DNA of 64,000 nucleotides, taken from positions 248,001 to 312,000 of the IMG/VR virus record IMGVR_UViG_3300040801_001224; one strand, given 5' to 3'. Under the pieces are notes generated by a model, which did no database searches, had not been told where the DNA came from, and worked only from the letters and a program-made list of their open reading frames with translations. The first letter of the stretch is position 1. Every line of letters starts with the position of its first letter. A program made the position numbers and the translations under genes. Below are positions 15,498 to 42,788 of the stretch, one piece after another.

Positions 15498-15516
15498 AAT
15501 TTAGATAAATAGTGTT

Positions 15517-15993
15517 ATGCGATTAGATGAGATACTAAAAGAAGAAACACAGATACAATTCGGATCAGCATTTATGAATCCAGTGACTAAAGATAAGACG
15601 AAATTATTTTTAGACAGCGAATTGTATATAGACCAGGAAGGCAAAGAATTCAAAAGTTGGTGGAGCAATCCAGAACAACATTTTAAGAATGGCGGTGTTT
15701 TTGCTGTGGCATATGCAGATGGAGAACCAGTAGGCGTTGGTGTCATAAAACTACCTGACGAAGTGCTTAGTGGTGAAGTAGATGGCAAGGAAATCGCGTA
15801 TATAGGAGTAGTCGGATTCTTAGTAAAAGAAGAATTTAGAAACTATGGGTTAGCAACACGGTTGGCTTATCTACTCGAAAACAAAATACTTAGTGTATAC
15901 AATCTTCCAGACAATACTACGCCAATTGTAGTTTGTACTGGCAAAGCCTGTGAAGTAGCACAGAATTTCAAAAGAATACAAATCGAAAAATAA
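15517..15993 (+). CDS. GNAT-family acetyltransferase-like protein with short MRLDEILKE leader
   Basis: FLVKEEFRNYGLATRL resembles GNAT motif A; GATAAATA at 15504. Confidence 0.7.
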   Translation: MRLDEILKEETQIQFGSAFMNPVTKDKTKLFLDSELYIDQEGKEFKSWWSNPEQHFKNGGVFAVAYADGEPVGVGVIKLPDEVLSGEVDGKEIAYIGVVGFLVKEEFRNYGLATRLAYLLENKILSVYNLPDNTTPIVVCTGKACEVAQNFKRIQIEK

Positions 15994-16051
15994 CAATATA
16001 TTGACAACGCCACTTACTTGTGTTATTATAATAATATAAGGAGAAGATGTT

Positions 16052-16249
16052 ATGATATATGAAAGCTCAAAAGACTACGGTACCGGTGAAGTCACCCTAC
16101 TGTTTGATAATCGAACACCATCCTATACGGAAATATCAGAGCATGTTGAGGAGAACTATTCAATGACGTCCTTCTCATACATGATTGAGGAACCTACCGA
16201 ATATAATGGTCTGGTAAATCCTGGTATAGTGAGGGTAATTCAACAATGA
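16052..16249 (+). CDS. hypothetical protein
   Basis: ORF track; promoter TTGACA at 16001; AAGGAG SD. Confidence 0.65.
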   Translation: MIYESSKDYGTGEVTLLFDNRTPSYTEISEHVEENYSMTSFSYMIEEPTEYNGLVNPGIVRVIQQ

Positions 16250-16428
16250 AATTCCAAGTTACTGTAATAGAAAGCGAACGTGGCTGGGGTCAAAAGATTG
16301 ACGAAGTCCGTGAGTTCAACAGTGCTGACAAAGCATGGAAATTTTACGATGAAGTAAACAGCAGAAATACAGAACGTACTGCTCCAGACATATACTGGCA
16401 AGCACAGCCGCCAGTAAGAATAGAATAA
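16246..16428 (+). CDS. hypothetical protein
   Basis: ORF track; ATGA coupling. Confidence 0.65.
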   Translation: MKFQVTVIESERGWGQKIDEVREFNSADKAWKFYDEVNSRNTERTAPDIYWQAQPPVRIE

Positions 16429-16429
16429 T

Positions 16430-16505
16430 AGTCCCGTAGCTCAGTCAGGAGAGCGCAGAGCTGATAACTCTGAGGTCGCAGGAGCAAAGCCTGCCGGGAC
16501 TACCA
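16430..16505 (+). tRNA. tRNA-Ile(GAT), atypical T loop AGCAAAG
   Basis: CAGAG-CTGATAA-CTCTG, CCA. Confidence 0.85.
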
Positions 16506-16512
16506 ATTTAAC

Positions 16513-16587
16513 GCCGAGTGGTCTGGATGTTTAGGTGCTGGTCTGCAAAACCATGTTAACAGGGTTAGATTCCCTGACTCGGCTCCA
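16513..16587 (+). tRNA. tRNA-Cys(GCA)
   Basis: GCCGAGT/ACTCGGC, CTGCAAA loop, TCCA. Confidence 0.88.
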
Positions 16588-16588
16588 A

Positions 16589-16665
16589 GCCCCTATAGCT
16601 TAACTGGTTAAAGCGTCGAGCTCATAACTCGGGGAGTCCTTGTTCGAATCAAGGTGGGGGCACCA
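16589..16665 (+). tRNA. tRNA with CAT anticodon (probably Ile2)
   Basis: GCCCCTA acceptor resembles Ile2; CTCATAA loop. Confidence 0.88.
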
Positions 16666-16672
16666 ATTTTTT

Positions 16673-16830
16673 TAACTTGTGCCGGAACTGGTATACGGGG
16701 GTGTGGTCTCAGTCAATATGAATAGGGTTGTGAATAAAGAATAGCAACTCTTGTACCCAGGGCGAAAACCACCAGGCGGTAAGCAGTACAACGCAAAACG
16801 CCATTGTAGGTTCAAATCCTACCAAGTTAA
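16673..16830 (+). tRNA. class II (Leu/Ser-type) tRNA gene with about 53-nt insertion in the anticodon loop
   Basis: TAACTTG/CAAGTTA acceptor, Leu-type D arm, GTAGG-TTCAAAT-CCTAC, GTGGT/ACCAC stem enclosing 60 nt. Confidence 0.65.
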
Positions 16831-16902
16831 TTATGCGCGGTCCACGTTCCTCGCTGTAACTTTTGTTACATAGGTTGTGATTATGGCGGCGCACCATTTT
16901 AT

Positions 16903-16976
16903 AGGGTCATAGTGTAATGGTAACACCCGAGATTTTGATTCTCGTATTCCAGATTCGAGTTCTGGTGACCCTGCCA
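16903..16976 (+). tRNA. tRNA-Gln(TTG)
   Basis: CGAGA-TTTTGAT-TCTCG, GCCA. Confidence 0.93.
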
Positions 16977-17392: not shown

Positions 17393-17396
17393 TACT

Positions 17397-17833: not shown

Positions 17834-18697
17834 CAAAGTTAAGCAATGTCGCATATCGACGATAAGGCACTGAAAGGTGTCGAAGGATGGGAATCCAACA
17901 GCCCATCACCAGCAATGGTAGAGGTATGCAAGCCGAGACTCCAATAAGATATCAGTCATGCTGGTATTAGGAGACAAAGGCTCTCTTAGGGAAGTACCCC
18001 CAGGCCAACGGTGAGGGGCGAAAGTAACAGGTGAAGCTGACTACCTAGGGTTCAAAGAGCTAAGTTGACAGAGTCAAAGGGTAGTGTTACTTGTACAAGA
18101 CTTAGCGGTCGAGTGCTGTGACGCAGTCTTATAGGTAGTGTCCACAACCAGGGCATAATATCTAGAAAGACAACTGAAAAGTAACCTTAGCGGGTGAAAC
18201 AGTATTCGGTGTAGCGTATTCTGTACTCCAAAAGAGTATGGACCGTTTTAGAGGCGCACATCGAGGTTGGTTTAAGTTAGCTCAATTGGTTAGAGCAACG
18301 GCATTTTGGAGCCGTGGGTTCTTGGTTCAATTCCAAGACTTACATACAAAAACGCAAAGACGCCTCTACGTAGTAGTAACGATTAAATGACTTAATTGTC
18401 CGTACACTCCGGTGAATACGGAATAGGTTGAACTCGCAAGGTGACGCCTAGTTTGTTTGAAGTCGCACATTGGATTTAGCGATCCTTAACTGCTCGCAAG
18501 GCAGATGGAACACTGACAGCAGAAACGACTACTATAAAAGTGTAAACGCCAGCACTATAAAATGGGCAGTCATGCTTGATACCGAAAGACGAGACCACGG
18601 TCTGTCCAAGGGGAGTAGGGCTTAACTAGCAAGGTCGCACTTGTTAGGTACGAGTTCCGAATGATCAAGTGTAATACGTCCTAACTCTCAGACGTAT
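17834..18697 (+). ncRNA. probable GOLLD giant ncRNA with embedded tRNA-like domain
   Basis: about 860 nt with no ORF over 60 aa, GC-richer, many hairpins, two CTCGCAAGG motifs, 3' GTGTAAT..CTAACTCTCAG hairpin, tRNA-cluster context; family assignment from memory. Confidence 0.7.
18271..18344 (+). tRNA. tRNA-like domain (Gln TTG-like, 8-nt loop, no CCA) inside the giant RNA
   Basis: GCTCAATTGGTTAGAGC D arm, ACGGC/GCCGT, CTTGG-TTCAATT-CCAAG. Confidence 0.7.
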
Positions 18698-18962: not shown

Positions 18963-19090
18963 AACATAATGGTCCTGTTCCTATAATAGCAGGTATTGGT
19001 GGTAGAAATGTGTAAACGGTTTAAGGGCACCACCCTTCCTTAAACTCCGGACGATACGTAACCGGCCATAAATTTAAGGAGAATATTAAG

Positions 19091-19167
19091 GGGGCGGTAG
19101 CTCAATTTGGGAGAGCACCTGTTTTGCAGGCAGGCGGTTGCGGATTCAAGTTCCGCCCGCTCCACCA
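19091..19167 (+). tRNA. tRNA-Ala(TGC)
   Basis: G3:U70, CCTGT-TTTGCAG-GCAGG, CCA. Confidence 0.93.
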
Positions 19168-23599: not shown

Positions 23600-23932
23600 A
23601 TGAAATAGACTAAACCAACATTACGTTTGTGGAAATGGGGAGAAGATAGATTTTCCCATCTTGGATACAAAATATTCACAGTGTTTTACTGTAAGTACTT
23701 TGACTTTTATATATTTAAATATCAACCAGGTGCCTATATACCAAAACACAAAGATCCAGGAAAATGGCATTACAGATTAAATTTTATATTTGGTGGTGAT
23801 GGCAAGTTTATATGTAAAGGTGCGTTAATAAACACCAAGTACATAACACTGTTTAGAGCGGACAAGTATTACCATAAGACAACACCAACTTCCACGACAC
23901 GTTATGTTGTAAGTTTTGGTCTAAAGTTTTGA
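23600..23932 (+). CDS. 2OG-Fe(II) oxygenase-like protein with in-frame TAG at codon 3 from the best start (or TTG start at 23627)
   Basis: IPKHKDPG (HxD), HYRLNF, distal H and RYVVSFG; AAGGA-9nt-ATG AAA TAG in frame. Confidence 0.65.
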
Positions 23933-23999
23933 GCCATTGAGGCCAGCCTAAGGATTCTAAACCCAGAAGGCGCCGGTTCAAGTCCGGCATGGCTCACCA
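23931..23999 (+). tRNA. aberrant 69-nt tRNA-like gene, possible CTA anticodon
   Basis: GAGCCAT/ATGGCTC-ACCA and GCCGG-TTCAAGT-CCGGC perfect; tiny D arm; weak anticodon stem around TTCTAAA. Confidence 0.5.
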
Positions 24000-27284: not shown

Positions 27285-27359
27285 AGTCCGGTAGCTCAGA
27301 GGCAGAGCACCTCGTTTACACCGAGGGGGTCGGGATCTCGGAATTCCCCCGGACTACCA
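27285..27359 (+). tRNA. tRNA-Val(TAC), atypical T loop
   Basis: CCTCG-TTTACAC-CGAGG, CCA; T loop CTCGGAA. Confidence 0.88.
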
Positions 27360-28584: not shown

Positions 28585-28657
28585 GGACACAAATGAATGA
28601 GACACAAGGAATATGTATTAGGTGCCCTAACCCACGCATTATTAGATAAATAGTATT

Positions 28658-29065
28658 ATGAAAGTCAACGATATAATTAAAGAAGGTACTGAAATATTCA
28701 TCAACGGTGAAGACAATGCGTTTGCCAAGCGTATGTATGGTGGTCCGGAAAAAGGCGCCATTGTTAAAATGTTTGTCACACAGGATGAATGGGAAGATAT
28801 CCGAAAGAAACAAGCCAATGATGAAATTGGTTCTTATGATATTGCCAGTGCTGAAACGATTATATCTGATTTAGAGAATCAGGGCTATGGCATCGAGTGG
28901 CCAACATCAGCAAGCCTAAACCAATCAGCCCGAGACCTAGAACGTCTATCACAGGATCCACGTTACAAAGGCAACCAATATGGCCTTGGCATGGAAGACG
29001 AAGTAGCACAGCTACGTGATAGAGCCCGCAAGTTAGCCCGCCAGTCAATTAAACCGGTTGACTAA
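28658..29065 (+). CDS. late hypothetical protein with MKVNDIIKE leader
   Basis: GATAAATA at 28645. Confidence 0.7.
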   Translation: MKVNDIIKEGTEIFINGEDNAFAKRMYGGPEKGAIVKMFVTQDEWEDIRKKQANDEIGSYDIASAETIISDLENQGYGIEWPTSASLNQSARDLERLSQDPRYKGNQYGLGMEDEVAQLRDRARKLARQSIKPVD

Positions 29066-29760: not shown

Positions 29761-30561
29761 ATGAAAGTAGCAATTGTGGGCTATGGCTTTGTCGGGAGAG
29801 CTGTGGATGCCGCGTACATAAATACCGACGTTGAAATGCTTATTGTGGATCCCCACAGTTCTGACGCCACCCACACATTAGAACAAGCTTGTGCTGAAGC
29901 AGATGTGTTCTTTGTTTGTGTTCCTACCCCACCTAAAGAAGATGGTAGTTGTGATGCTAGTATAGTTGACGGAGTTTTACGCAAATTGAGCGCATGTAAG
30001 TGCCAGAAAAAACTGGTTATCCTAAAAAGCACATTAACGCCTGACTACCTGGAAGTAATGAAAGAGTACAAGCTTAAGCTCGTATATAATCCAGAGTTCT
30101 TGCGTGAAAGCCATTATGTTGAAGATTATTTGAATACAGAAGTACACATAATGGGTGGTCTCAAAGAACATGTTGACGAAGCAAAACAAATACTGGCACT
30201 GTCTAACTGTAGGAGCAACCGGGTATTCTGGTGCCACCAGGGAAACGCAAGTTTAGCAAAGTATGCGATAAACAGTTTTTTAGCTATGAAAACTGTGTTT
30301 ATGAATGAGATGTACGAACTACAAAAAAATATTGAAACAAAAGGTTCTTATGAAGAGTTCATACAACTCATGAGCCTAGATTCCAGAATCGGAGACAGTC
30401 ACATGAATGTGCCGGGACCAGATGGTTATTATGGCTTTGGGGGCAAGTGTTTCCCAAAAGACACGAAGGCATTGATTGAATATGCCAAGAAGTTAGGCTG
30501 TGAAGTACAGACCATTGAGCAAGCATGTATTAAAAACGAAAAAATTAGAAAGAAAGCGTGA
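29761..30561 (+). CDS. ugd: UDP-glucose/GDP-mannose dehydrogenase family protein, lacking C-terminal domain
   Basis: GYGFVG, FVCVPTP, KST, YNPEFLRE, KYAINSFLA, GFGGKCFPKD. Confidence 0.9.
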   Translation: MKVAIVGYGFVGRAVDAAYINTDVEMLIVDPHSSDATHTLEQACAEADVFFVCVPTPPKEDGSCDASIVDGVLRKLSACKCQKKLVILKSTLTPDYLEVMKEYKLKLVYNPEFLRESHYVEDYLNTEVHIMGGLKEHVDEAKQILALSNCRSNRVFWCHQGNASLAKYAINSFLAMKTVFMNEMYELQKNIETKGSYEEFIQLMSLDSRIGDSHMNVPGPDGYYGFGGKCFPKDTKALIEYAKKLGCEVQTIEQACIKNEKIRKKA

Positions 30562-30626
30562 CATAGTTCACATTAAATTACACGGTATTATGGATAAATA
30601 CGGGAAAGGTAACCAGGGAATTGGCA

Positions 30627-33600
30627 ATGAACAAGTTAAAACTACTGTTATTAACAGCATTTCTTACACTATCATTGGGTGCTGATGATACAGAAATATA
30701 TCAATCAAATGTAAATAATAATTCTGGCGAGAAACCAAAGGTCTTAATTATATTTGATAATTCATCAAGTATGGTGACTAACAACGTAACACAGCAAGCA
30801 GTTGCGTATAATCCAAGCATAGATTACAATGGCAGTTTTCGTGATGACCGAATATATTGGTCCACAACAGGGACACCATCTGGCAATAACTATTTTAATG
30901 CTGGCCGTAACCGTTGTGCTGAATCATACGGACCATTAGCGGCTGAAGGCTTCTTTCAGACCAGGGCGCAACGTTGGCGTAGTAGTGGGCGTTTTGGTGG
31001 GTCATGGCGAAACCTAAGTCGCCGGGTAACAACACCGGTTCACGTTGATTGTGAAGCAGATGTGATCGCTGGCAATGTTGGCAATGGCAGTGGACAGAGT
31101 GATGGTCTTCCCTCACCAACTGGTCCTTACGGCGGCACTGGTAACGTCAACTGGGGTGGCAACTCTTATACATTCTATACAGGCAACTACCTAAACTGGT
31201 TCTTTAACGCCAGCACAGTTGAATCGACACGTTTAGCAGTAGCACAAGACGTAATACGTGACCTGGTATCTGCTAATACTGGCATTGATTTTGGCCTGAT
31301 GATATTCAACAATAACTCTGACTCACGTTGGGACGGTGGTCGAATCGTTAACTCCATTGTAGAAGGTGACGACGGAACACAGAGACAGTCCATATTAAAC
31401 AACATTGGACTGATAAATCCAAAAACCGGATCGCCATCTACCTTCACCCCACTATGTGAAACAACGTATGAAGCGTATCGTTATATGAGTGGACAGAGTG
31501 TTGTATTTGCCAATGAGATAAGATTAGGTGAAGACACTATACCCAAGGACCCTAAGGCTGAAAGCCCACTAGGTGTATACGATTCACCTGCTACGGACTG
31601 TGCTTTTACGTATATCATTCTAATGACAGACGGACAGCCAACTCGCGATGAGTCAGCAAATCAGTTCATACGTGATCTGACAGGCAAGGATTGTCTAACA
31701 TATGGTAATACCACAAGTTGTCTACCAATAATCGCAGAATACATGGCTAATACTGATCTAGACAATGACACAACTAATGGTAACCAGTATGCTATTACGT
31801 ATACCATTGGATTTACTACTGACCAGGAACTTTTACAGGATACAGCACGTTTGGGCAAGGGACAATACTTTACTGCTAATGATACAGCAAGTCTAACGGC
31901 GGCTTTCCAGGGTGCTATTACAGCCATCCTATCCACTAATTCAGCATTCACTTCACCAGCAGTAGCAGTGGACACGTTCAGCCGAACAGAGTCACGTGAC
32001 GATATATTCTTTGCTATGTTTGAGCCAAGTGACACAACTAACTGGCCAGGCAACATCAAACGTCTACGATTAGCAGATAGTTCTGGTGATAAAATACTAG
32101 TGGATGTCAATGGAGATCCTGCCCTCGATCCTTCTACCGGACGTATCAGAGACACGGCACAGACGTACTGGTCACCAAACATAGATGGCAATCAGGTAAC
32201 TGAGGGTGGTGTGGGTGAGCTATTAGCTAGGCGTGATCCTGATACTCGTGAGATTTACACTAACACTGGAACCGGTGGTTCATTAGAAGACTTTGATGAT
32301 GTTGCGTTCGATGTTGGTGCGTTTGGTGTCACAGATATAAATCAAGTGTATGATGAATTTAACGTAACTAACGCCATACAACTAACAGATTTGATCCTTT
32401 GGTCAGCTGGTTATGATGTTGATGACGAAAATAACAATGGTGACCGAACTGATGCGAGACCCTGGATACTTGCCGACATGCTACACTCAAAGCCTCTAGC
32501 TATCAACTATGGCGCAACAGGCGGTGTGTACGATAAAGACAACCCAAATATCAAGCTAGTAGTAGGCACTAATGGCGGTTTCTTCCACATGTTCAGCACT
32601 GACACCGGTGTAGAAGATTGGGCATTCTTCCCTAAAGAACTCAGCAGTATGTTGTTGGAAAGACGTGCTGAACGTGTGACTGCTGATAACGTATATGGCA
32701 TTGATGCTTCACCAGTTGTTTATATACTGGACAAAGAGCTTGACGGCACTATTGACGCCAGTGACGGTGACCGAGTTTATGTGTACTTTGGGTTACGTAG
32801 AGGAGGTAGCATACTATACGCTTTAGATATCACTGACCCAGGTAGCCCAGAGTTCTTATTTAAAATCGACAGGAACACAACTGGTTTTAGTCTATTAGGA
32901 CAAACTTGGAGTGAGCCATTGGTGACTACAATATCAGGACACGATGGTCCAGTGCTAATCTTTGGTGCTGGCTACGACACAAATAAGGACGCAACTGGCG
33001 TTGGTACGCCAGACAGTGTGGGCTTGGGTGTCTATGTCGTTGACGCAATCACCGGTCAACTGTTACGCAGTGTGACGCCAGCCGCTACAACTAACACCAA
33101 CCTACAAGCACCTATACAGCACAGTGTACCAAGTAATATTGCTGGCATAGATTCAAATGGTGGTGGTAATACCGACAGACTATACTTTGGTGACACTGGC
33201 GGTAACTTATGGCGTGTGGATATGCTTGGTGACCTTGACGAACAGAAATGGCGTGTCACTAAACTGGCTGATGTTAATGACGGAACGACGGCTGGTGATA
33301 GACGTTTCTTCAACGAACCGGATGTTGTTAGAACTAAGAGTACGCTATGTTTAGACGACGAGTGTACCCAAGTCGCTAATGTAAACTATGATGCGGTATT
33401 GATCGGTAGTGGTGACAGGACAAATCCTAACGCCACTGATGTAGCCAACGAGTTCTATATGTTCCGTGACTTCCAAACTGGAGCTTACAGTACTGACATA
33501 GCGGATTGCGATGATGACACAATCGTTGAATACAGATGCGACCTACCAATCACACCTGATGATTTGTATGACGCAACCACTGACATTGTTGGCACTGACG

Positions 33601-34013
33601 AAATAGCAGAAAAGAAACTACGTAAGTCTATGGGATGGCGTATTGGATTGAATGCTGTTGGTGAAAAAGCATTGTCCGAAAGTATAACGTTAGGCGGCAC
33701 AGTGTTCTTCACAACGTTCTCACCAGACCCACAGTTAGTGAGTGTTTGTGTGCCATTGCCAGGACAGGGTCGCTTATATGCTGTTCGGGTTTCCGATGCA
33801 TCTGCAACCAAAGACTTCAACAATGACGGTAACTTGGATAGAGAGTCATTACTGGGTAGCTTAATACCAGATGCACCCAGCTTACACTTTGGTGATGATG
33901 GGTTTATCCGTTTATTATTCCCGAGTGGCGGTGGTTTATCAGACACCAACCCTGTTAACAGTGGGGAGAGTTTGCCTGGCTTATATAGCATATACTGGTG
34001 GAGAGCTGAATGA
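30627..34013 (+). CDS. pilY1: type IV pilus adhesin PilY1/PilC (vWA-like plus beta-propeller)
   Basis: signal peptide then DDTEIY; IIFDNSSSM; MTDGQP; LADMLHSKP; GTNGGFFH; GQTWSEP; DRLYFGDTGGNLWRVD; GSGDRTNP; FTTFSP. Confidence 0.93.
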   Translation: MNKLKLLLLTAFLTLSLGADDTEIYQSNVNNNSGEKPKVLIIFDNSSSMVTNNVTQQAVAYNPSIDYNGSFRDDRIYWSTTGTPSGNNYFNAGRNRCAESYGPLAAEGFFQTRAQRWRSSGRFGGSWRNLSRRVTTPVHVDCEADVIAGNVGNGSGQSDGLPSPTGPYGGTGNVNWGGNSYTFYTGNYLNWFFNASTVESTRLAVAQDVIRDLVSANTGIDFGLMIFNNNSDSRWDGGRIVNSIVEGDDGTQRQSILNNIGLINPKTGSPSTFTPLCETTYEAYRYMSGQSVVFANEIRLGEDTIPKDPKAESPLGVYDSPATDCAFTYIILMTDGQPTRDESANQFIRDLTGKDCLTYGNTTSCLPIIAEYMANTDLDNDTTNGNQYAITYTIGFTTDQELLQDTARLGKGQYFTANDTASLTAAFQGAITAILSTNSAFTSPAVAVDTFSRTESRDDIFFAMFEPSDTTNWPGNIKRLRLADSSGDKILVDVNGDPALDPSTGRIRDTAQTYWSPNIDGNQVTEGGVGELLARRDPDTREIYTNTGTGGSLEDFDDVAFDVGAFGVTDINQVYDEFNVTNAIQLTDLILWSAGYDVDDENNNGDRTDARPWILADMLHSKPLAINYGATGGVYDKDNPNIKLVVGTNGGFFHMFSTDTGVEDWAFFPKELSSMLLERRAERVTADNVYGIDASPVVYILDKELDGTIDASDGDRVYVYFGLRRGGSILYALDITDPGSPEFLFKIDRNTTGFSLLGQTWSEPLVTTISGHDGPVLIFGAGYDTNKDATGVGTPDSVGLGVYVVDAITGQLLRSVTPAATTNTNLQAPIQHSVPSNIAGIDSNGGGNTDRLYFGDTGGNLWRVDMLGDLDEQKWRVTKLADVNDGTTAGDRRFFNEPDVVRTKSTLCLDDECTQVANVNYDAVLIGSGDRTNPNATDVANEFYMFRDFQTGAYSTDIADCDDDTIVEYRCDLPITPDDLYDATTDIVGTDEIAEKKLRKSMGWRIGLNAVGEKALSESITLGGTVFFTTFSPDPQLVSVCVPLPGQGRLYAVRVSDASATKDFNNDGNLDRESLLGSLIPDAPSLHFGDDGFIRLLFPSGGGLSDTNPVNSGESLPGLYSIYWWRAE

Positions 34014-34210
34014 TAACACTTAAATTCTGTAAAAATGTAGATATGTGTTTTTCTGAATATACTGCTTTTGTCAAACATTACAATATAGATGAGACATGTG
34101 GCATTGACGAGGATGACCAGTATATACTCGTCACTGTTGATAAAGAATTCGCAGACGAAGATCTACTGGCTATGGCTCTAGTTCATGGAGTCATAGCTAC
34201 AAGGGATTGA
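34010..34210 (+). CDS. hypothetical protein
   Basis: ATGA coupling to pilY1. Confidence 0.6.
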   Translation: MITLKFCKNVDMCFSEYTAFVKHYNIDETCGIDEDDQYILVTVDKEFADEDLLAMALVHGVIATRD

Positions 34211-34235
34211 CACAACCACTATAATGCTGTATAAT
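34207..34235 (+). promoter_or_regulatory. sigma70-type early promoter with CCAC box
   Basis: TTGACA-17-TATAAT. Confidence 0.85.
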
Positions 34236-34264
34236 GTACTTATTGTATATTATGGAGTATTATA

Positions 34265-35299
34265 TTGACAACTAAACGTATCGGCTTTGCTTGTAAGTAT
34301 ATGGTTGAAGACCAGACGCAAACAAAGAAACTATTAGAAGAACAGCAACGTCCACTCAACACTCGCTCTACGACCAACACGTGGTTACAGAAGCAATCAT
34401 ATGGTGATGCTATAGAACGTTTATACAGCATTGTTAACCATAACTTAGACAGTGTTAAACGCCAGTTAGAATACGTTGATTCTCTGGGCAACGATAACCT
34501 ACGCATGATGCGTATTAGCAGTGACTTACTGCCATTCTATACACACGCTGATTGGCGTGATTTGTACAAGAATCGCACTTTTTTAGACGTTATTGAGCGC
34601 AAATTTGCCGACATTGGTAAATATTCACGTGACAAAGACATACGCCTCAGTTTCCACCCAGGACAATTCACATGCCTTGCCAGTGACAGACCCGAAGTTG
34701 TTGAACGCTCTATTGAAGAGTTTGAATACCATGTTGACATGGTGCGCTGGATGGGTTATGGTCAACGATTCCAAGACTTTAAGTGTAACGTACATATCGG
34801 CGGCCGTTTAGGTCCTGACGGTATTCGTGCCGTTTACCCACGTTTGAGTACAGAGGCTAAGAATGTCATCACGCTCGAGAATGACGAGATGTCATGGGGC
34901 TTAAACAGTGTCCTGTCACTGAGCGATATTATACCGGTGGTTATGGATCTACATCATCATTGGGTACGCAATGGTGAATATATACAGCCAGACGATGACC
35001 GGGTAAAGCAGGTTATAGATTCGTGGCGTGGTGTACGTCCTACGATGCACTATAGTTATAGTAGAGACGAAGCATTGCCCGAAGGTTTTGACCATACCAC
35101 ACTACCGGACATGGCCCAGTTACTTGAGCAAGGACATAAGAAGCAGAAGCTTAGAGCTCACAGTGATTTTTATCCGAACGAGTTGGCTAACCGGTGGGCG
35201 TTGAGCTTCTGGCCTTACTTTGACATTATGTGTGAGTCAAAGTGTAAGAACTTAGCAAGCATTAAATTGTATGAGTTCTGGGAAAATAACATAAAATAA
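34265..35299 (+). CDS. uvsE: UV damage endonuclease (UVDE)
   Basis: RIGFACK, RISSD, RLSFHPGQF, LENDE, DLHHHW, MHYS, HSDF, MCESKCKNLA. Confidence 0.95.
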   Translation: MTTKRIGFACKYMVEDQTQTKKLLEEQQRPLNTRSTTNTWLQKQSYGDAIERLYSIVNHNLDSVKRQLEYVDSLGNDNLRMMRISSDLLPFYTHADWRDLYKNRTFLDVIERKFADIGKYSRDKDIRLSFHPGQFTCLASDRPEVVERSIEEFEYHVDMVRWMGYGQRFQDFKCNVHIGGRLGPDGIRAVYPRLSTEAKNVITLENDEMSWGLNSVLSLSDIIPVVMDLHHHWVRNGEYIQPDDDRVKQVIDSWRGVRPTMHYSYSRDEALPEGFDHTTLPDMAQLLEQGHKKQKLRAHSDFYPNELANRWALSFWPYFDIMCESKCKNLASIKLYEFWENNIK

Positions 35300-35356
35300 G
35301 TATTGACAAAACGTTATACTTGTAGTATAATAGAATATAGAATTAAGGAGTGATAA

Positions 35357-35914
35357 ATGAAGATATCATTACGTAAGGCGAATGCCCTTCAGCATTCAAT
35401 TAACGAGGTCATCCGTGACCTAGATTTTAACGCTGGTGTCAGCATTAACGAGTTCGAAGATTTTCGTACTCAAATTAACACTGCTAATGAGCAGTATTCC
35501 ACGAACTTTGATCGTCGTGAATCACTGTTAAATGTTTTATTTGGCATTCGCAAGCTGGTTGCGAGAGCAAACGTTGAAGCTGGAATTTCAGACAAGCTGG
35601 CGGATGTCGCTCTATTGGAGAAGCGCATCCAGAACAGCAATGAAGTCGCTACAAAGAACGCACGTTTAAGTGATGCTGTAATCGAGGGTAAAGTTGAAAA
35701 ACTAAAGGCCAGTGAAGATCGTTACAGCTTCCGTGAAGGGGTTGACACCACTGTCTTTACAGACATTAACATATCGGATGCTCGTGACCGTGTGCGTAAG
35801 TTCAAGCGTCAGAAGCAACGATTACAGGACGAGCTATTAGAGCTCAATGTCCGAACTGAGATCGTTTTAGACGATGATTCAGTCAAAGTTTTAGAAGGCG
35901 AAAGCTTAATCTAA
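35357..35914 (+). CDS. coiled-coil phage protein (MKISLRKANALQ...)
   Basis: ORF track; promoter 35303-35331; AAGGAG. Confidence 0.8.
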   Translation: MKISLRKANALQHSINEVIRDLDFNAGVSINEFEDFRTQINTANEQYSTNFDRRESLLNVLFGIRKLVARANVEAGISDKLADVALLEKRIQNSNEVATKNARLSDAVIEGKVEKLKASEDRYSFREGVDTTVFTDINISDARDRVRKFKRQKQRLQDELLELNVRTEIVLDDDSVKVLEGESLI

Positions 35915-35936
35915 AAACGGCTCTGCGGAGCCACCC

Positions 35937-36189
35937 GAGTCAGGCAAGAAACGAGGATAGACAACCGTGTAGTTACGGAGAGTGTTTACACTCTATTAAC
36001 TAATACATATGATGAGATCGAGCCTGTATGTATGTGTGCTTAGATGAATGAAGACTTGCACATTGCTACACACGAATAGGCAGGCCCCTGCACATTGCGT
36101 TTTGTGTATTGCGCGAACAGTTTTTGAAGCCGAGTGCCTTAAACTGCCGATTGCACCTTGCTTTGTCTATTACTCACTTGCCTTGACTC
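35937..36189 (+). ncRNA. structured 3' RNA with three TGCAC(A/C)TTGC repeats
   Basis: GAGTCAGGCAAG/CTTGCCTTGACTC and ATAGACAA/TTGTCTAT long-range stems; repeats at 36056, 36088, 36151. Confidence 0.7.
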
Positions 36190-36207
36190 TTTTTATTATG
36201 GTGTTGT

Positions 36208-36477
36208 ATGTTATACGTTTATGAATGGCAGTTTATTTTTGATGATCCCTTACATCTATTTAAACCAGGATATATCGAAGAACTAAGCAAAACTGCCAGC
36301 AAATATCATGGTCAGTTAGTTCTCGCAAGAGACGAAGACTATGCCCTTGTGGAATTTGAGACTAAACAAGATGTTATGGCATTTATAATGTCTACTGACG
36401 CAAAAGGGACGGCTGAACGTAATCCACATTACGACACAATACTTGAATATCAGAAAACACATAGGGTAGTTAAATGA
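36208..36477 (+). CDS. small protein of the FxxxxDxxxFxL family
   Basis: VEFETKQDVMAFIM. Confidence 0.65.
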   Translation: MLYVYEWQFIFDDPLHLFKPGYIEELSKTASKYHGQLVLARDEDYALVEFETKQDVMAFIMSTDAKGTAERNPHYDTILEYQKTHRVVK

Positions 36478-36800
36478 GTGATTGGACACCAGATAGTTGG
36501 GTAGTAGTCAAACTACCAGATAGTATTGCGCCAGGAGCTTTCAAAGTAATAGGCGGTTGGTCTGGTGGCTATTTATATGGTGATAGTTGGCGTGTAAACA
36601 GTGGCATCAGCAAAGTTAAGCATGAAGGTGATTACTGGCTGTTTGAAGGATTTAGCGGTTCCACATATCGTTGCCACAAAGGCGCTTGCCGGGTGACAAT
36701 GGCAATGGGTGAACCAATTGCTACCTTTGAAAAACATGGTTCAGAAATAATGGAAGACCGGGATAATTGGTTAAGCCTTAATAAAGAAATTATAGCATGA
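36474..36800 (+). CDS. hypothetical phage protein
   Basis: PDSWVVV..GGWSGGYL.GDSWR.NSGI. Confidence 0.75.
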   Translation: MSDWTPDSWVVVKLPDSIAPGAFKVIGGWSGGYLYGDSWRVNSGISKVKHEGDYWLFEGFSGSTYRCHKGACRVTMAMGEPIATFEKHGSEIMEDRDNWLSLNKEIIA

Positions 36801-36885
36801 GCAAACATGGCACAGAATTTTATAAACTTGCGACTAAGATATTAGTTGTGTTTATTGTCTGTGTCGTTATTATGGAGAGCTTGTT

Positions 36886-37086
36886 TTGAACGTAAAAGAC
36901 GCCATTAAAATACTTGAAAAGTTAGATCCAGAATCCCAGTTACGCATAAAGACAAACGAGCCATCACTTGGTAGGCTATCTTCAACAGAAGTGTGTGGGA
37001 TTGTCAATGGCATAGATTGGGATGCTGGCAAAGTTTTCTTTTATCCTGCCACACCATTGTATAAGGAGAAACCAGAATGCGAGTAA
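36886..37086 (+). CDS. hypothetical protein
   Basis: ORF track. Confidence 0.55.
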   Translation: MNVKDAIKILEKLDPESQLRIKTNEPSLGRLSSTEVCGIVNGIDWDAGKVFFYPATPLYKEKPECE

Positions 37087-37289
37087 GGAGCTCAATTGGA
37101 GAGGCTGAGAACCCCACAGTTACAAAATACAAGAAGATGTTAGAAGCGATGCATTCTGAAAATAAGTTACTGAAAGCTAAACTTGCTATTGCTGAGGATT
37201 TATGTCGTGGTGAAGGTGGCGATCTACATAAGAGATTCCGCTCACGCACTAGCAATAAACATTTCATTAAAAAACACCTTAAGGGATGA
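37077..37289 (+). CDS. hypothetical protein
   Basis: ORF track; AAGGAG. Confidence 0.6.
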   Translation: MRVRSSIGEAENPTVTKYKKMLEAMHSENKLLKAKLAIAEDLCRGEGGDLHKRFRSRTSNKHFIKKHLKG

Positions 37290-37759
37290 TTATGAGAGTA
37301 ATAGACGAGGATGCCCGAACATTAGAAGATATTTTCACAAACTACACATCAGTGCCACTGCCCAATCAGATGACGCTTGGTGACATGATTAGAAAGTGTT
37401 ACTATATTGGCGAAAAGCTAATGGAGAAAAAGTTGTCTGGTGAACCTTTCTGGGATAAGGTCAGCTTTGATTTCGGAAACTATTCTCCTTCCGGTCTATG
37501 TAGTTGGCGAGGTTCTTACGAAGAACTGTCAATTGAACATTCAAATGATAGAATCACTTTTATTGAATTTCAGAAGATGATTGAAAACGCCAAGGGGCAA
37601 TCGTTCGAAGGATGGAAGGGCGGTGAGTATACAATGGATGAAAATACTCCGGTCTGGGTCGCTGAAGCAGGAACAATGGGACATACTGTGGTACATGATA
37701 TCATTCTAACTGAAAACAATGGTGTTATCATTGAGACTCGGTTTGGAGAATACTCATAG
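37286..37759 (+). CDS. hypothetical protein
   Basis: ORF track. Confidence 0.7.
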   Translation: MIMRVIDEDARTLEDIFTNYTSVPLPNQMTLGDMIRKCYYIGEKLMEKKLSGEPFWDKVSFDFGNYSPSGLCSWRGSYEELSIEHSNDRITFIEFQKMIENAKGQSFEGWKGGEYTMDENTPVWVAEAGTMGHTVVHDIILTENNGVIIETRFGEYS

Positions 37760-37874
37760 GTTTTGCCTATAGTCGCAATAGGAACAAACAGTTAAAAAAC
37801 CCCTTTTAATAGGTTTTATTTATTATAAATATGTGTTATAATACACACATAATTTATTAAAGGAGAAACTTATT

Positions 37875-38135
37875 ATGATCAGCCATAATTTAGACTTTAA
37901 CCGAGGAACATATGTGATAGGACACTACAAGTATCCTAAATGCCCGAGCTGTGATGACGCTAAACAATTATTATTGGATAACGATATCCAATACACTTTT
38001 GTTCAAGCAGACAAGCAATTGTTTGGTAAAGTGATAGGCGCAACAAAGTCACAAACAGTTCCGCAAATCTTCATGGACGGCGAGTTCATTGGAGGGTATG
38101 AAAACTTACAAGCTAAAATAGGAGAAAAGCAATGA
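37875..38135 (+). CDS. glutaredoxin
   Basis: CPSC, TVPQIFMDGEFIGGY. Confidence 0.9.
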   Translation: MISHNLDFNRGTYVIGHYKYPKCPSCDDAKQLLLDNDIQYTFVQADKQLFGKVIGATKSQTVPQIFMDGEFIGGYENLQAKIGEKQ

Positions 38136-38644
38136 AACAAGTACCATCAGTAACATTTAAAACTCGTGTTCGTGACGAGTCAATTGGGGGTGATAACCCA
38201 TTCCGTTGGCAGGACGTAACTTCAGAAGACTACTTCGCAGGTAAGCGTTCTATTGTATTCGCACTACCAGGTGCTTATACTCCGACGTGTAGCAATTTTC
38301 AATTGCCTAACTTTGAAAAGCTATATGAAGACTTTAAGGCTAAGGGCATTGACGAGATCTACTGCCTATCAGTCAATGACGCTTTCGTCATGTATCAGTG
38401 GGGTAAACAGCAGGGTGTTGAAAACATTAAACTAATCCCGGACGGCAACGGTGAATTCACTCGCAAGATGGGCATGTTAGTAGACAAGTCTAACCTAGGC
38501 TTTGGTATGCGCTCATGGCGTTATGCTATGGTTGTTAACGATATGGAAATTGAAAAGATCTTCTGTGAAGAAGGCTTTTGTGATCTAGCGCAAGACGATC
38601 CATATGAGTTAAGCTCACCGGAAAATATCTTAGAAAACTTATAA
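38132..38644 (+). CDS. peroxiredoxin (Prx5-like)
   Basis: LPGAYTPTCS, SVNDAFVM, DGNGEFT, GMRSWRYAM. Confidence 0.95.
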   Translation: MKQVPSVTFKTRVRDESIGGDNPFRWQDVTSEDYFAGKRSIVFALPGAYTPTCSNFQLPNFEKLYEDFKAKGIDEIYCLSVNDAFVMYQWGKQQGVENIKLIPDGNGEFTRKMGMLVDKSNLGFGMRSWRYAMVVNDMEIEKIFCEEGFCDLAQDDPYELSSPENILENL

Positions 38645-38730
38645 AAAAGTGGTCTAAAAGGTTGACATAGTGGTCAACATTGTGTATAATGTATTTATAA
38701 ATTAATAAAACAGTACACGAAGGAACCACT

Positions 38731-39474
38731 ATGTCACTTAACTGGTATAACGAAGACGACAAAGACATCTTCATGTCCCTCAAGGGCCTTGTTAATAACA
38801 ACAACGGCTTCTGGAAATCTATTAAGCAACGTTCCTTCCTCATCGAAAAGAAAATGGGTGGCAAAATCCGAGAGCCACACTCATTCATCAAAGAAAACTT
38901 TGGCATGGATTATCGTGATGGTCACCGTTATGTGATTGTTGACGCCATTGCTCAATGGTCCACGTATGGTTCACGTGGTCAAGTGCCAGTGTACTGGGGT
39001 TTCGAACTTGACGACTATGGTATCACTCGTCATTATAAGATTGGCAACAAGGGTAACCTACGTCAGGGGGCTCGTCCAGATGCTGGCAAAACAAAATTGT
39101 TATGGGAACGTCCTGAAGAAGCCGTTTCAGAACTTAAAACTGAAATCGACGAAGCTGTTGAAGAGGCTCGTCTAGCAGAATTCAATCACCTAATGGGCAT
39201 TCGTTATGGTGATCACATTGGTAACATTGGTGATAAGAAATACGAGTTCGGAACAGTAACACTTGTTGCTAAAAGCCAGACAACTAACTTCCGCGGTGAA
39301 TACGTTACTTGGCAACGTTTCAAGGATTCTGACGGCAACCTTATCGACTACACAGGCAAAAGTCTGGGTCTTGAACGTGGTGACCAGGCCAACCTCATTG
39401 GTAACATCAAAGCACATTTCGAATCAAAGAAAGACGAGTGTATCACACGCATTATCTATCCTAAAGTAGCGTAA
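38731..39474 (+). CDS. hypothetical protein, possible C-terminal OB fold
   Basis: ORF track; promoter 38662-38690. Confidence 0.7.
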   Translation: MSLNWYNEDDKDIFMSLKGLVNNNNGFWKSIKQRSFLIEKKMGGKIREPHSFIKENFGMDYRDGHRYVIVDAIAQWSTYGSRGQVPVYWGFELDDYGITRHYKIGNKGNLRQGARPDAGKTKLLWERPEEAVSELKTEIDEAVEEARLAEFNHLMGIRYGDHIGNIGDKKYEFGTVTLVAKSQTTNFRGEYVTWQRFKDSDGNLIDYTGKSLGLERGDQANLIGNIKAHFESKKDECITRIIYPKVA

Positions 39475-39526
39475 CTTTCGCAGTAACATAGATAAATACA
39501 ACTATAATAACTATAGGGTATTTACT

Positions 39527-39784
39527 ATGAATGACATGAGAAAATTAATGGAAGCAGTAGAATTAGACGAAGTCTATCACAAATCTATTGGCTACGAACA
39601 AGTTGAAAATTCAATCTACAAATTAAGAAAGGCTCTACGTCCCGACAGTGTTCTGTGTAGAAAAATTTCAGAAAATGCTGATAACGTTGAAGCTGAATTT
39701 GCCGAAATGAGTCAAGCGATTGAACGAATCGCTGAGATATGGGATGAAGTAGATTATATCATTGGCATAAATGGAGAAGAGTGA
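39527..39784 (+). CDS. late acidic protein with MNDMRKLMEAVEL leader
   Basis: GATAAATA at 39491. Confidence 0.75.
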   Translation: MNDMRKLMEAVELDEVYHKSIGYEQVENSIYKLRKALRPDSVLCRKISENADNVEAEFAEMSQAIERIAEIWDEVDYIIGINGEE

Positions 39785-39785
39785 T

Positions 39786-40091
39786 ATGTCTGACATGAGA
39801 AAACTAATGGAAGCAGTTGAACTTAATGAGTTCGATATGGAAGCTTCAGAAGCCGTACATGAGCTTGAAGACATCAAGCAACAAATCGCAAATCTACTAG
39901 ACGAAGCAAAGCAGGTTCTACGCAGTGTGGGTAACGAAGGTGTTTCAGAACGTGCGAGACGTACCTGGTTAGCGCATATGACTACCGCATTATCTAATGA
40001 TCATGAATGGATGGGTAGGGATATGAACACAATGCAGGATACTATCGAAGAACTCTACCAGATGAACGATGAGTCAGGTGAGGAATACTAG
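39786..40091 (+). CDS. late acidic protein with MSDMRKLMEAVEL leader
   Basis: N-terminus near-identical to previous gene. Confidence 0.75.
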   Translation: MSDMRKLMEAVELNEFDMEASEAVHELEDIKQQIANLLDEAKQVLRSVGNEGVSERARRTWLAHMTTALSNDHEWMGRDMNTMQDTIEELYQMNDESGEEY

Positions 40092-40523
40092 ATGCGTATA
40101 TTTGAAATGACAGACTATGAGTTGGTTGAGGTAACACTAACTGAGTCAGCAGTTGTAGAAGACATCCCGGAGCCAGATGACCCGAATGCTATGGGCAAAC
40201 ATGAATTCTTCATTAAGCGTCCAAGTGGTGAGTCATCATATTACACAACAAAGGGTGACATGCCCTTCGCCAAAGCCAAAGAACTTGCCAAAAAATTATC
40301 ACAGGGTGGCGAAGTACAATACAGCTCAATGAATGCTGGCGGCTATGCTGATCCAATGGCTGATCAGTTCAGCATGAACCCACGTGATATAGAACCAGAA
40401 TTTGAGAATCCAAAACCATCTGGCATGTTAGACCGAACTGGCATAAAGACTAAGAAAGTCCCAGCATCAACTAAAGCAGGACTGTTAGATCGTTTACGTG
40501 CCGCAAAAAAGGAGATTGAATGA
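40092..40523 (+). CDS. hypothetical protein
   Basis: ORF track; GAGGA SD. Confidence 0.7.
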   Translation: MRIFEMTDYELVEVTLTESAVVEDIPEPDDPNAMGKHEFFIKRPSGESSYYTTKGDMPFAKAKELAKKLSQGGEVQYSSMNAGGYADPMADQFSMNPRDIEPEFENPKPSGMLDRTGIKTKKVPASTKAGLLDRLRAAKKEIE

Positions 40524-40756
40524 TGAGTGAACTACCAGGAAAAGATTTATCCGAAAAAGAATATAGCATTTGGAAAAAACTACAATCAAGACGATTCACA
40601 ATGGCAATGCTTGTTATCATCGTTTCATCTCTAATGCTATACAAGGGACTTATACAGCCAGAAAACTATGAAACACTAATGATATGGATTAGTGGCATCT
40701 ACATTATTGGCAAACCATTCGGTGATATGATTGGTGAAATATTAGCAAAGAAATAA
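40520..40756 (+). CDS. small two-helix membrane protein
   Basis: SRRF..hydrophobic helices, possible holin-like. Confidence 0.65.
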   Translation: MMSELPGKDLSEKEYSIWKKLQSRRFTMAMLVIIVSSLMLYKGLIQPENYETLMIWISGIYIIGKPFGDMIGEILAKK

Positions 40757-40757
40757 C

Positions 40758-42788
40758 ATGCGCCTAAACGACATCCTATTAGAACTAAACTTTAACAAGA
40801 GTGATGTTCGCCAACTAGCACTTAACAGTAAAGTTGATTGCGGCTTTGAAGCTGAGTTAGTCTGGCCTATAGACGATGGCGGCATGGATTCATCAACTAT
40901 TCAAGATATGGACTGGGATGATCTGCAAAACGCCATATATAACCAGGAAGGGCAACGGGGTGTTGATTCAGTCAGACAAGTGTATGACCAATGGGTCATG
41001 GACTATGCGTATGATGAAGTATACTCTAGTCACCTTGAATCTATAATAGAGAATAATACCGAAAGCTGGCACTGGACCGAGTTCGTAGAAGAAGACGAGG
41101 ACAAGTTCAGGGACTGGTGCGAAGATAACGATAAAGAGTTTGACGTACAGGATCAGGCAACTATCGAAGAGTGGATAGAAGATGATGTCGTAGCAAATGA
41201 TGAATGGCGTGAATGGATTCGTGAAAAGCTAGACTATGATGGCACGTTATCGGATGCCATATTTGAAATCGTAAATGAAGAATACGATATAGACTACTGG
41301 CTATCAAGAAATAATGTATATGATATTTTAAGCGATGCTGAAGTTTATGTGGACGAGTTTGATGAAGATGTTTATATAGAACAAATAGCAGAAGAAATAG
41401 GCCCTATACTAGAACGCTATAGTCAGTTTGACAGTTACGTGTATGGTGGTTACCACAGCAACACGGGCTCAACAGCTATGTGGCGTATTGAAACTGATAG
41501 CTCAATTGAATCGAACACGTATAGTGACGGTGAATTTGTCGGTGTAGAAATAATTAGTCCTGTATTTGAAACGCCTGGCGACATGTTGGAGGAAATGGAA
41601 ATGCTATTCAACAATCTGCCAGCCACAGTTGGAACAAATTCAAGCACAGGTTTACACGTTACAATGAGTATGCCACGTAAGACAGACTCTAAACCAAATA
41701 AACTAAAGATGGCCTTACTGTTGGGTGAGAAGTTTATCCTAGATATATTCAGCCGTCGTGGCAATTCATACACACTACCACATGGTGACAAAATCTTACA
41801 AAAACTACTACAAATGGATCCAGCTGAAATTAATGACTTGCGCTTTGAAAAGCTAGAAAAATTAGTTACAAGCCAAATGGAACAAGCCAAGTATAGCACT
41901 ATTAACTTCAAGAGTGAAGAGAACGAATATGGCAATCAGCTTATTGAATTCCGTGTTGCGGGCGGAACAGACTACGAAGTATACATGGATAAAATTGAAA
42001 AGACTGTGGTGCGTTATGCGACTGTTATGCGAGCTGGCTATTCGGACTTTTACAAAGAAGATTACGCAAAGGCACTCACACGTTTTGTACACAAGATATC
42101 AAAAGTTACCAAACAAGCTACTGGTGACGATCCTATCCTAAAGGCATTCGTTGCCATGGGCAGTCCAAATAATGCTAAATCTATTGACCAACAGTATAAA
42201 GATGCTAAGGCAAACGAAATGGAAGGCTTCATGACTGAAGCTGAAGAAAGGCTGTATAACATGGTACGTGTGGCCCTGGAAAATGTTGATGTGCAGAAGT
42301 TTAAAAAGGACGTTAACCCTAGTGTGTCACGTGGTGTGAAAATGGCGTTTAAGCGTTTCAACGGCCATCCAAAGAGATTTTTAGAAAGGCACCCCAGAGC
42401 TCTAAAAGAATACTATGCCCTACAACGTGTATTCAGACAGCCAGATCAGATAGAAGCTTTCGTTGATAAGCCCTGGGAAAAAGTATTCATACTAACTAAC
42501 AATGCCCTGGAAAACTTAAAGCAGGGCAAGCCTGTTGGTTATGATCAGATCCATGTGGGACACAAGTCACTCATGTATTCCTGGGATGATGCCGTTAAGT
42601 TTAGACAGCACAATTCAGAAGACAAGGTAGAAAAATCTAAAAAAGAACTCACAGATAAATTCAATGTAGACTATGATTGGGATTTAACCGGTGAACCGAA
42701 CAAATGGGTAGTCATTGACGGTGGCCGTATAGACTCGAAGTTCATGCAGGCACTATTCATGATGAAAATATTAGTACTGAGTACTTGA
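40758..42788 (+). CDS. putative amidoligase (COOH-NH2 ligase fold) with acidic insertion
   Basis: GFEAE, WRIETDSSI, EIISP, STGLHVTMS, KYSTINF, IEFRVAGG. Confidence 0.85.
   Translation: MRLNDILLELNFNKSDVRQLALNSKVDCGFEAELVWPIDDGGMDSSTIQDMDWDDLQNAIYNQEGQRGVDSVRQVYDQWVMDYAYDEVYSSHLESIIENNTESWHWTEFVEEDEDKFRDWCEDNDKEFDVQDQATIEEWIEDDVVANDEWREWIREKLDYDGTLSDAIFEIVNEEYDIDYWLSRNNVYDILSDAEVYVDEFDEDVYIEQIAEEIGPILERYSQFDSYVYGGYHSNTGSTAMWRIETDSSIESNTYSDGEFVGVEIISPVFETPGDMLEEMEMLFNNLPATVGTNSSTGLHVTMSMPRKTDSKPNKLKMALLLGEKFILDIFSRRGNSYTLPHGDKILQKLLQMDPAEINDLRFEKLEKLVTSQMEQAKYSTINFKSEENEYGNQLIEFRVAGGTDYEVYMDKIEKTVVRYATVMRAGYSDFYKEDYAKALTRFVHKISKVTKQATGDDPILKAFVAMGSPNNAKSIDQQYKDAKANEMEGFMTEAEERLYNMVRVALENVDVQKFKKDVNPSVSRGVKMAFKRFNGHPKRFLERHPRALKEYYALQRVFRQPDQIEAFVDKPWEKVFILTNNALENLKQGKPVGYDQIHVGHKSLMYSWDDAVKFRQHNSEDKVEKSKKELTDKFNVDYDWDLTGEPNKWVVIDGGRIDSKFMQALFMMKILVLST

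Follow-up and report, generated by a model that had tools for sequence, protein, structure and literature searches.

In bacteriophage T4, a capsid-targeting sequence reportedly stands at the N-terminus of the internal proteins IPI, IPII and IPIII and of Alt (Mullaney and Black 1996). IPII and IPIII both read MKTYQEFIAE in the T4 record. Such sequences are propeptides of 10-20 residues that the prohead protease always cuts after Glu, Alt being cut at ITE-6, and the internal proteins have only the targeting sequence in common (PMC5694885, PMC3012670). Here, we describe leaders of a similar kind in a 64-kb stretch of DNA, the window. It covers bases 248001-312000 of a phage record that is 328,096 bp long, has a G+C content of 40% and carries direct terminal repeats. 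As in T4, a short N-terminal peptide ending in hydrophobic-x-Glu is found on otherwise unrelated late proteins, and enzymes are among them: a GNAT acetyltransferase and a predicted amidoligase. These leaders probably are T4-style capsid-targeting propeptides that load their cargo into the phage head.

The consensus leader has 8-9 residues, M-[KR]-hydrophobic-x-[DE]-hydrophobic-hydrophobic-x-E, and a second leader type reads M-[NS]-D-M-[RK]-K...hydrophobic-x-E. The six N-termini quoted in the sequence-only reading of the window are all found at the gene starts given for them. Across the whole genome, for which our own home-made gene calls gave 508 genes, the 6-residue pattern M-[KRH]-[LIVFA]-x-[DE]-[LIVMF] begins 21 proteins, compared to 2.2 (maximum 8 in 2000) when the first 12 residues of the 508 predicted proteins were shuffled by column, keeping the composition of each N-terminal position. 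The long pattern, in which [LIVMA]-x-E or [LIVMA]-E ends at residue 8-9, was present in 9-10 of the 508 and expected in 0.06-0.1 (maximum 2). After internal methionines, the 6-residue pattern followed in only 5 of 2179 cases. Chance origin of the leader motif is excluded. With the same gene caller, the short pattern was nearly absent from T4 (2/273), T5 (1/183), phiKZ (1/368) and SPO1 (0/177), and the long pattern was not found in any of these four phages, while the jumbo phages PA5oct and Atu_ph07 had nine short and three long, and seven short and four long, respectively. The motif is therefore a mark of this lineage and not of gene starts in general.

The leader is an add-on that is portable between unrelated proteins. 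When the carriers were compared all against all by BLASTP without their first 12 residues, no pair reached E < 0.1. The adjacent genes at 39527 and 39786 share M[NS]DMRKLMEAVEL and are otherwise not detectably similar once these 12 residues are trimmed. The homologue of the 135-amino-acid (aa) window protein in the Sinorhizobium phage phiM9 (120 aa) has no leader, its first residue aligning with position 10-11 of the window protein. Leader codons differ between carriers, and an origin of the leaders by DNA duplication was rejected for that reason. Because the codons differ, and because the leader occurs on genes with a promoter box 5 nt before the ATG, on genes led by a Shine-Dalgarno sequence and on genes internal to operons, the constraint acts on the peptide. 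Taken together, short N-terminal leaders ending in hydrophobic-x-Glu recur on unrelated proteins, as they do in T4. In a second jumbo-phage contig, the neighbors of an amidoligase gene begin with MRAHEFITE (two adjacent unrelated proteins), MRAKEFITE and MKIKDIILE. The T4 pattern M-K-x-x-(x)-E-F-I-x-E resembles MRAHEFITE and MKVNDIIKE, although the consensus in this phage differs from it and is one residue shorter, and although there are about 10-20 carriers here compared to about five in T4. Two more starts of the capsid-targeting type were observed in T4 (NC_000866) with the gene caller, MKTFKEFIKE (54 aa, 18966-19130, minus strand) and MELITELFDG (61 aa, 123265-123450, minus strand, next to alt).

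The genome also encodes the machinery that a T4-type targeting system would need. It has an S77 prohead protease of T4 type (Peptidase_S77, PF03420, E 1e-27; genome position 78837-79466), a gp23-type major capsid protein (PF07068, E 2e-81) and a gp55-type late sigma factor (phrog_12791, E 4e-73). The head genes are ordered portal, gp67-like, 262-aa protein, protease, 370-aa scaffold homologue and capsid protein, so that, as in T4, the gp21-family protease is accompanied by a scaffolding core of gp22 type and a capsid protein of gp23 type. The gp67-like core protein itself (81 aa, genome position 77648) lies between portal and protease, the position of T4 gene 67, and starts with MKAKDLLVE. Its homologue in PA5oct, gp150, starts with MKINDIITE, its counterpart in Atu_ph07, gp199, starts with MKLTELFNPLTE (MKLTELF..LTE), and both were detected in virions. 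When the capsid proteins are aligned, L-R-E-42 of this phage coincides with L-T-E of T4 gp23, and L-V-E in PA5oct and L-M-E in Atu_ph07 occupy the same place. We take L-T-E of T4 gp23 to be the Glu-65 maturation site. The propeptide of T4 gp23 has 65 residues (PMC5694885). What sets this phage apart from T4 is its 328-kb jumbo genome, which belongs to the PA5oct/Rak2/Atu_ph07 lineage; its capsid protein is 79% identical to that of the Pseudomonas jumbo phage PA5oct and 68-70% identical to those of Rak2-like phages.

The sequence-only reading had also placed the leader genes behind late-promoter boxes or in an operon led by one, and this arrangement was confirmed. The window holds 25 GATAAATA boxes compared to 4.2 expected (sd 2, maximum 9 in 100 shuffles), and the distance from box to ATG is 5 nt at 15517 and 28658 and 28 nt at 39527, the last box heading the operon 39527-42788. 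Boxes with the core ATAAATA were also found 14-45 nt upstream of structural genes. Box enrichment and a gp55 homologue thus occur together, as in T4-type late promoters, the gp55-dependent TATAAATA. The amidoligase gene of the second jumbo-phage contig lies behind a GATAAATA box as well.

A fixed spacing between box and start codon is also seen. ATAAATA-N5-ATG occurs 26 times in the genome, compared to 2-7 times for spacings of 0-11. For 22 called genes, the box ends exactly 5 nt before the start codon, which leaves no room for a Shine-Dalgarno sequence. In the window, examples of such ATGs are those at 15517, 17397, 19218, 22823, 26434, 27381, 28658, 43715 and 60687 on the plus strand and at 8759 on the minus strand. 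From this spacing, a class of leaderless late mRNAs is predicted; no RNA sequencing run was found to contain the phage sequence. PA5oct has the same modal box spacing as this phage (eight cases); ATAAATA-N5-ATG was counted five times in Atu_ph07, twice in T4, five times in phiKZ (equal to its control), and never in T5 or SPO1.

Evidence on carriers in purified virions is available by proxy, from PA5oct and Atu_ph07. For PA5oct, the virion set was taken from the "ESI-MS/MS" notes of the GenBank record (93 of 461 proteins), and 8 of the 11 genes with the 6-residue start are so marked (Fisher p = 2e-4). For Atu_ph07, the whole genome was examined with W or Y also allowed at position 3, which gave 14 pattern genes, and genes were matched to Supplementary Table S5 (Attai et al. 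2018) by molecular weight (0.02 kDa) and genome order, recovering 134 of 140 rows. Of these 14, 12 belong to the virion proteome, compared to 131 of 714 genes overall (p = 6e-8): gp43, 46, 47, 53, 196, 199, 381, 482, 487, 548, 561 and 672. Three of the 12 share an identical MRLIDLLE. Leaders similar to the second type are also carried by virion proteins, PA5oct gp261 (MNDSIKKYISIAE) and Atu_ph07 gp594 (MSDLRKFINILNE, 15 peptides). The virion data for RsoM2USA, ten gel bands with ORF26 not among them, are uninformative. Together with the machinery genes, the portability of the leader and its presence on the core protein, the two proteomes lend strong support to the proposal that late genes of the window carry T4-like capsid-targeting leaders ending in a putative cleavage site at Glu.

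The 676-aa protein encoded at the end of the operon matches Amidoligase_2 (PF12224) over residues 207-366 (E 4e-9; 37.1 bits vs a cut-off of 22), and its first catalytic strand, GFEAE, lies at residues 29-33. A word-based homology search found 38 relatives, several of them on contigs of 289-344 kb. In an alignment of 23 sequences, E9 (the last residue of the leader), G29, E31, E33, D247, S249, E264, H300, R333, R399 and R419 are invariant. The AlphaFold2 (AF2) model has a pLDDT of 80, with residues 1-7 below 50 (disordered), and was aligned by VIA-align with glutamine synthetases (GS; Z 10.9-9), gamma-glutamylmethylamide synthetase (10.4), Dop (9.8), PafA (8.5) and glutamate-cysteine ligases (8-7); Foldseek of the same model against the PDB gave no match at E <= 0.001. 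Amidoligase_2 is said to belong with PafA/Dop and the glutamine synthetase/gamma-glutamyl ligases (Iyer et al. 2009). Shared with PafA, Dop and GS are the fold (Z 10.9-8.5 over about 200 aligned residues), the G-x-E-x-E strand and the conserved Asp/Glu/His/Arg columns. In contrast to them, the amidoligase carries an acidic helical insert of 190 residues behind its first strand, and its C-terminal half is helical and unrelated. By its profile, its fold and its metal/ATP residues, the protein is a predicted GS/PafA-like carboxylate-amine ligase.

The relatives are also informative about the leader. The stretch before the invariant Glu comprises 9 to about 230 variable residues, most members begin with MRLxE, MRAxEF or MKFxDV, and the family keeps hydrophobic-x-Glu followed by [ILV]-[NK]. 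Such an N-terminus would be expected of a variable propeptide that is followed by a conserved processing site. In Atu_ph07, the homologue is AUZ94978.1, which starts with MRWQDISSKKLTE and is encoded two genes from the portal. Accession-number calibration on the portal (gp198), the protease (gp204) and the capsid protein (gp215) identifies it as gp196, a 57.94-kDa protein of which 14 unique peptides (30% coverage) were recovered from Atu_ph07 virions. By this proxy, packaging of the amidoligase is well supported. Among the homologues, P0015, P0017, P0018, P0019 and P0031 include some whose N-terminus is extended by about 200 basic, low-complexity residues ahead of the conserved Phe/Leu-x-Glu site. 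P0031 is in addition fused to gamma-glutamyl cyclotransferase domains (PF13772, PF06094), a fusion that hints at gamma-glutamyl chemistry.

The GNAT is a small protein with a Pfam match to PF00583 (E 3.9e-7; 30.8 bits vs a cut-off of 20.7) and the acetyl-CoA pyrophosphate-binding motif R-x-x-G-x-A, here R-N-Y-G-L-A at residues 108-113. Structural matches in the Atlas were all GNATs and mostly begin at residues 8-12, from which it appears that the leader lies outside the fold. The only relative found, P0042, is 50% identical and starts with MKIHEITE, the same pattern in a different sequence; the phage collection, the PDB sequences and NCBIfam gave no match, and scans of IMG/VR for relatives of the GNAT and the amidoligase gave nothing usable. 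The AF2 model, built from two sequences, was poor (pLDDT 48). As to a DNA-modifying GNAT of the Mom type, there was no evidence either way, the Atlas matches being to generic GNATs only. The sequence-only reading had both enzymes packaged. For the amidoligase this was supported through its relative in Atu_ph07; for the GNAT, the leader makes packaging plausible. The leaders likewise suggest that the 135-aa protein and the small proteins of the operon may be packaged.

If the leaders act as in T4, the cargo genes would be transcribed late from (G/T)ATAAATA promoters by the host RNA polymerase with the phage gp55-type sigma factor. The leader would then bind to the scaffolding core and carry each protein into the assembling prohead, where the gp21-family (S77) protease would cut after Glu of hydrophobic-x-Glu. 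The mature cargo would remain in the head with the DNA and enter the next host alongside it. For the window, the putative cargo would consist of the GNAT acetyltransferase, the GS/PafA-like amidoligase and four small proteins. Ejection and modification of host targets are proposed by analogy, on the precedent of T4 Alt and on published predictions for phage GNATs (PMC7824862). A GS/PafA-like amidoligase, a GNAT and possibly an Acb1 are not known as head cargo of T4.

Two other groups of systems invite comparison. Propeptides of ejection proteins have been described in phiKZ, 201phi2-1 and SPN3US (Thomas et al.; PMC5694885). There, as proposed here, head proteins are cut after Glu by a gp21-related protease, the N-termini of paralogues are conserved, and the propeptides are thought to target proteins to the prohead. 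Phages of the phiKZ type differ in their A/S/G-x-E motifs, in propeptides that mostly exceed 100 residues and in a protease of family S80, and the phiKZ genome has the short form of the present motif only once and the long form not at all. Some of the amidoligase homologues, with their propeptides of about 200 residues, resemble the phiKZ style. The second group comprises polyvalent proteins and injected phage GNAT/ART enzymes (Iyer et al. 2017, 2021; PMC7824862). The idea of acetyltransferases and other modifying enzymes delivered with the DNA against host RNA polymerase, translation or immune signaling is common to both; polyvalent proteins, however, are large multidomain fusions, whereas the enzymes described here are single-domain proteins, each with a small portable tag.

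Several observations weigh against targeting to the head as the function of the leaders. The phage is known only from sequencing runs of one microbial-mat metagenome study, so that support from virions comes from its relatives, and cleavage after Glu is, for this clade, something that we infer. The virion lists are noisy, that of PA5oct containing ribonucleotide reductase, ClpP and a ligase, and head and tail were not separated in them. Three PA5oct and two Atu_ph07 motif proteins were undetected in virions. The short form also occurs on a cytidylyltransferase, and its PA5oct homologue, gp307, was undetected as well. The GNAT is without a characterized relative. Finally, tblastn with all predicted proteins found no PA5oct homologues of the six window proteins, for which reason a homologue could be looked for in virions only in the case of the amidoligase, through Atu_ph07.

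One could suppose that the leader does direct proteins into the prohead, and that its carriers are core components to be degraded and expelled, or enzymes at work inside the producing cell or the capsid, where they could, for instance, modify packaged DNA or proteins of the virion, rather than effectors in the next host. The same leader is indeed carried by the gp67-like core protein, and leader-like starts occur on the scaffold (MTKKFEQILSE) and on the protein at the gp68 position. T4 gp22, gp67 and gp68 are cut to fragments (PMC5694885), and the scaffold gp153 of PA5oct is not in the virion list. Against this, gp196 and eleven other tagged proteins of Atu_ph07 were recovered from mature virions with many peptides, and the T4 precedents, the internal proteins and Alt, remain in the head and are ejected. 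We regard this alternative as unlikely, if the strongest competitor of delivery to the next host.

It is far less probable that the pattern is a generic feature of gene starts, be it an amphipathic first helix or an mRNA initiation signal on late or leaderless transcripts, with no targeting involved. Several carriers are predicted to be leaderless, with a box 5 nt before the ATG, and many proteomes commonly have Lys or Arg at position 2. This view does not account for the excess over column shuffles (21 observed vs 2.2 for the short form, 10 vs 0.1 for the long), for the absence of the long motif and near-absence of the short form in four control phages, for synonymous codons that differ, or for the motif on Shine-Dalgarno-led and operon-internal genes; nor does it explain why Glu is invariant across distant amidoligases and why the motif is so strongly tied to virion proteomes. 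Equally hard to credit is a leader that serves as a degron or chaperone handle for phage Clp/FtsH/DnaJ machinery and times protein abundance. Homologues of PA5oct ClpX, ClpP, ClpS, ClpA/B and DnaJ are encoded in the genome, yet this view leaves unexplained the hydrophobic-x-Glu ending, which matches the aligned capsid maturation site, as well as the leader on the portal-adjacent core protein and the recovery of tagged proteins from virions.

Capsid targeting being the reading that we prefer, a bolder extension of it may be considered. The leader could amount to a clade-wide address code that lists the whole set of ejected proteins of PA5oct/Rak2/Atu_ph07-type phages. Its conserved cargo, the ligase, would be pre-packaged and, seconds after infection begins, would covalently tag an amine or a protein of the host, in a pupylation-like or gamma-glutamylation attack delivered with the DNA, and the GNAT and Acb1 would be pre-loaded for counter-defence. 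We offer this extension as a conjecture that we think more likely wrong than right.

The mechanism is already known from T4. What appears undescribed is its occurrence in this jumbo-phage lineage, along with the consensus and the cargo; the literature searched gave no paper in which Rak2-like phages are linked to a capsid-targeting sequence. Should the tag act as it does in T4, it would provide a simple sequence handle that lists the head-carried, DNA-delivered proteins of a large group of jumbo phages, including the therapy candidate PA5oct and the plant-pathogen phages Atu_ph07 and RsoM2USA. Because they act before any phage gene is expressed, head-delivered proteins are prime candidates for anti-defence and host takeover. 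Most of the tagged proteins are ORFans and thus beyond the reach of homology search. The tag also points to a conserved family of virion-borne, predicted GS/PafA-like ligases. Being short and portable, it might also serve to bring foreign proteins into the capsids of jumbo phages, a use that is made of the targeting sequence in T4.

Outside the window, the leader-like start MRLYEIDSEP occurs on an anti-CBASS phosphodiesterase of the Acb1 family (PF23474, E 1e-16; G000:C1:232773-233225, L019:2774-3226). The profile match begins at about residue 10-11, behind this start, which has the short form of the motif only. It might be a pre-packaged counter-defence enzyme. A cluster of tagged small proteins, also outside the window (G000:C1:161465-172009, L017), has the starts MRLDQI, MRLDEIAQT, MLVSEVLFE, MRLIEIAE, MKITEIIIE and MRLSELVLE. 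The cluster shares synteny with PA5oct gp230-239, a group found almost entirely in virions, and one product of the cluster, a 95-aa protein, is extremely basic, like a T4 internal protein.

The features of the window that bear on the leaders are collected in Table 1.

Table 1. Late-promoter boxes, leader-bearing genes and operon members between 15504 and 42788 of the window.
Feature	Position	Strand	Remarks
GATAAATA late-promoter box	15504..15511	+	5 nt upstream of GNAT ATG; without Shine-Dalgarno sequence; predicted leaderless transcript
GNAT acetyltransferase, 158 aa	15517..15993	+	leader MRLDEILKE = 15517-15543; PF00583
GATAAATA box	28645..28652	+	5 nt upstream of ATG of 135-aa gene
135-aa putative cargo protein (phrog_38700)	28658..29065	+	leader MKVNDIIKE = 28658-28684
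GATAAATA box	39491..39498	+	heads five-gene operon 39527-42788
85-aa protein, second leader type MNDMRKLMEAVEL	39527..39784	+	L-M-E and A-V-E sites
101-aa protein, leader MSDMRKLMEAVEL	39786..40091	+	beyond leader unrelated to upstream gene
143-aa acidic protein, MRIFEM	40092..40523	+	short leader form, I-F-E at residues 3-5
77-aa protein, hydrophobic core, without leader	40523..40756	+	operon member; sequence only
676-aa predicted amidoligase (Amidoligase_2)	40758..42788	+	leader MRLNDILLE = 40758-40784; PF12224

The genes from 39527 to 42788 are contiguous or overlapping, and no terminator-like site was found on the plus strand within the operon. The ATG at 39786 is internal to an open reading frame at 39771-40091 and is favored as the start because it has the better Shine-Dalgarno sequence (GGAG, 8-14 nt upstream). 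A homologue of the 101-aa protein lies directly upstream of an amidoligase gene in the metagenome contig L021, and for the 143-aa protein no relatives were found in the phage collection.

The region 15504-42788 is an accessory stretch with at least 26 tRNA genes, and megablast of window positions 30000-42800 against the phage collection gave no match. Tagged genes beside a tRNA cluster are another likeness to T4, in which ipI, ipII and ipIII flank such a cluster. A perfect sigma-70 promoter (TTGACA-17-TATAAT, 42785-42813, plus strand) follows directly after the amidoligase stop and precedes tRNA-Leu (42839-42925); from its position, this tRNA seems to be under host-type transcription and the flanking cargo genes under late boxes. 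The tRNA gene at 18270-18347 (plus strand) is read by ARAGORN with a four-base anticodon (tttg) and no amino acid assigned, and Rfam confirms it as a tRNA (49 bits); it may be frameshift-suppressor-like or otherwise unusual. Two further tRNA-like genes on the plus strand, 27285-27356 and 23931-23996, scored 48 and 29.5 bits in Rfam and are not on the ARAGORN list. An N-terminus resembling a signal peptide and a PilY1 beta-propeller domain (PF05567, E 1e-7), unusual in a phage, occur in a 1128-aa protein (30627-34013, plus strand), which is followed by a UvdE UV-damage endonuclease at 34265-35299 (E 4e-46).

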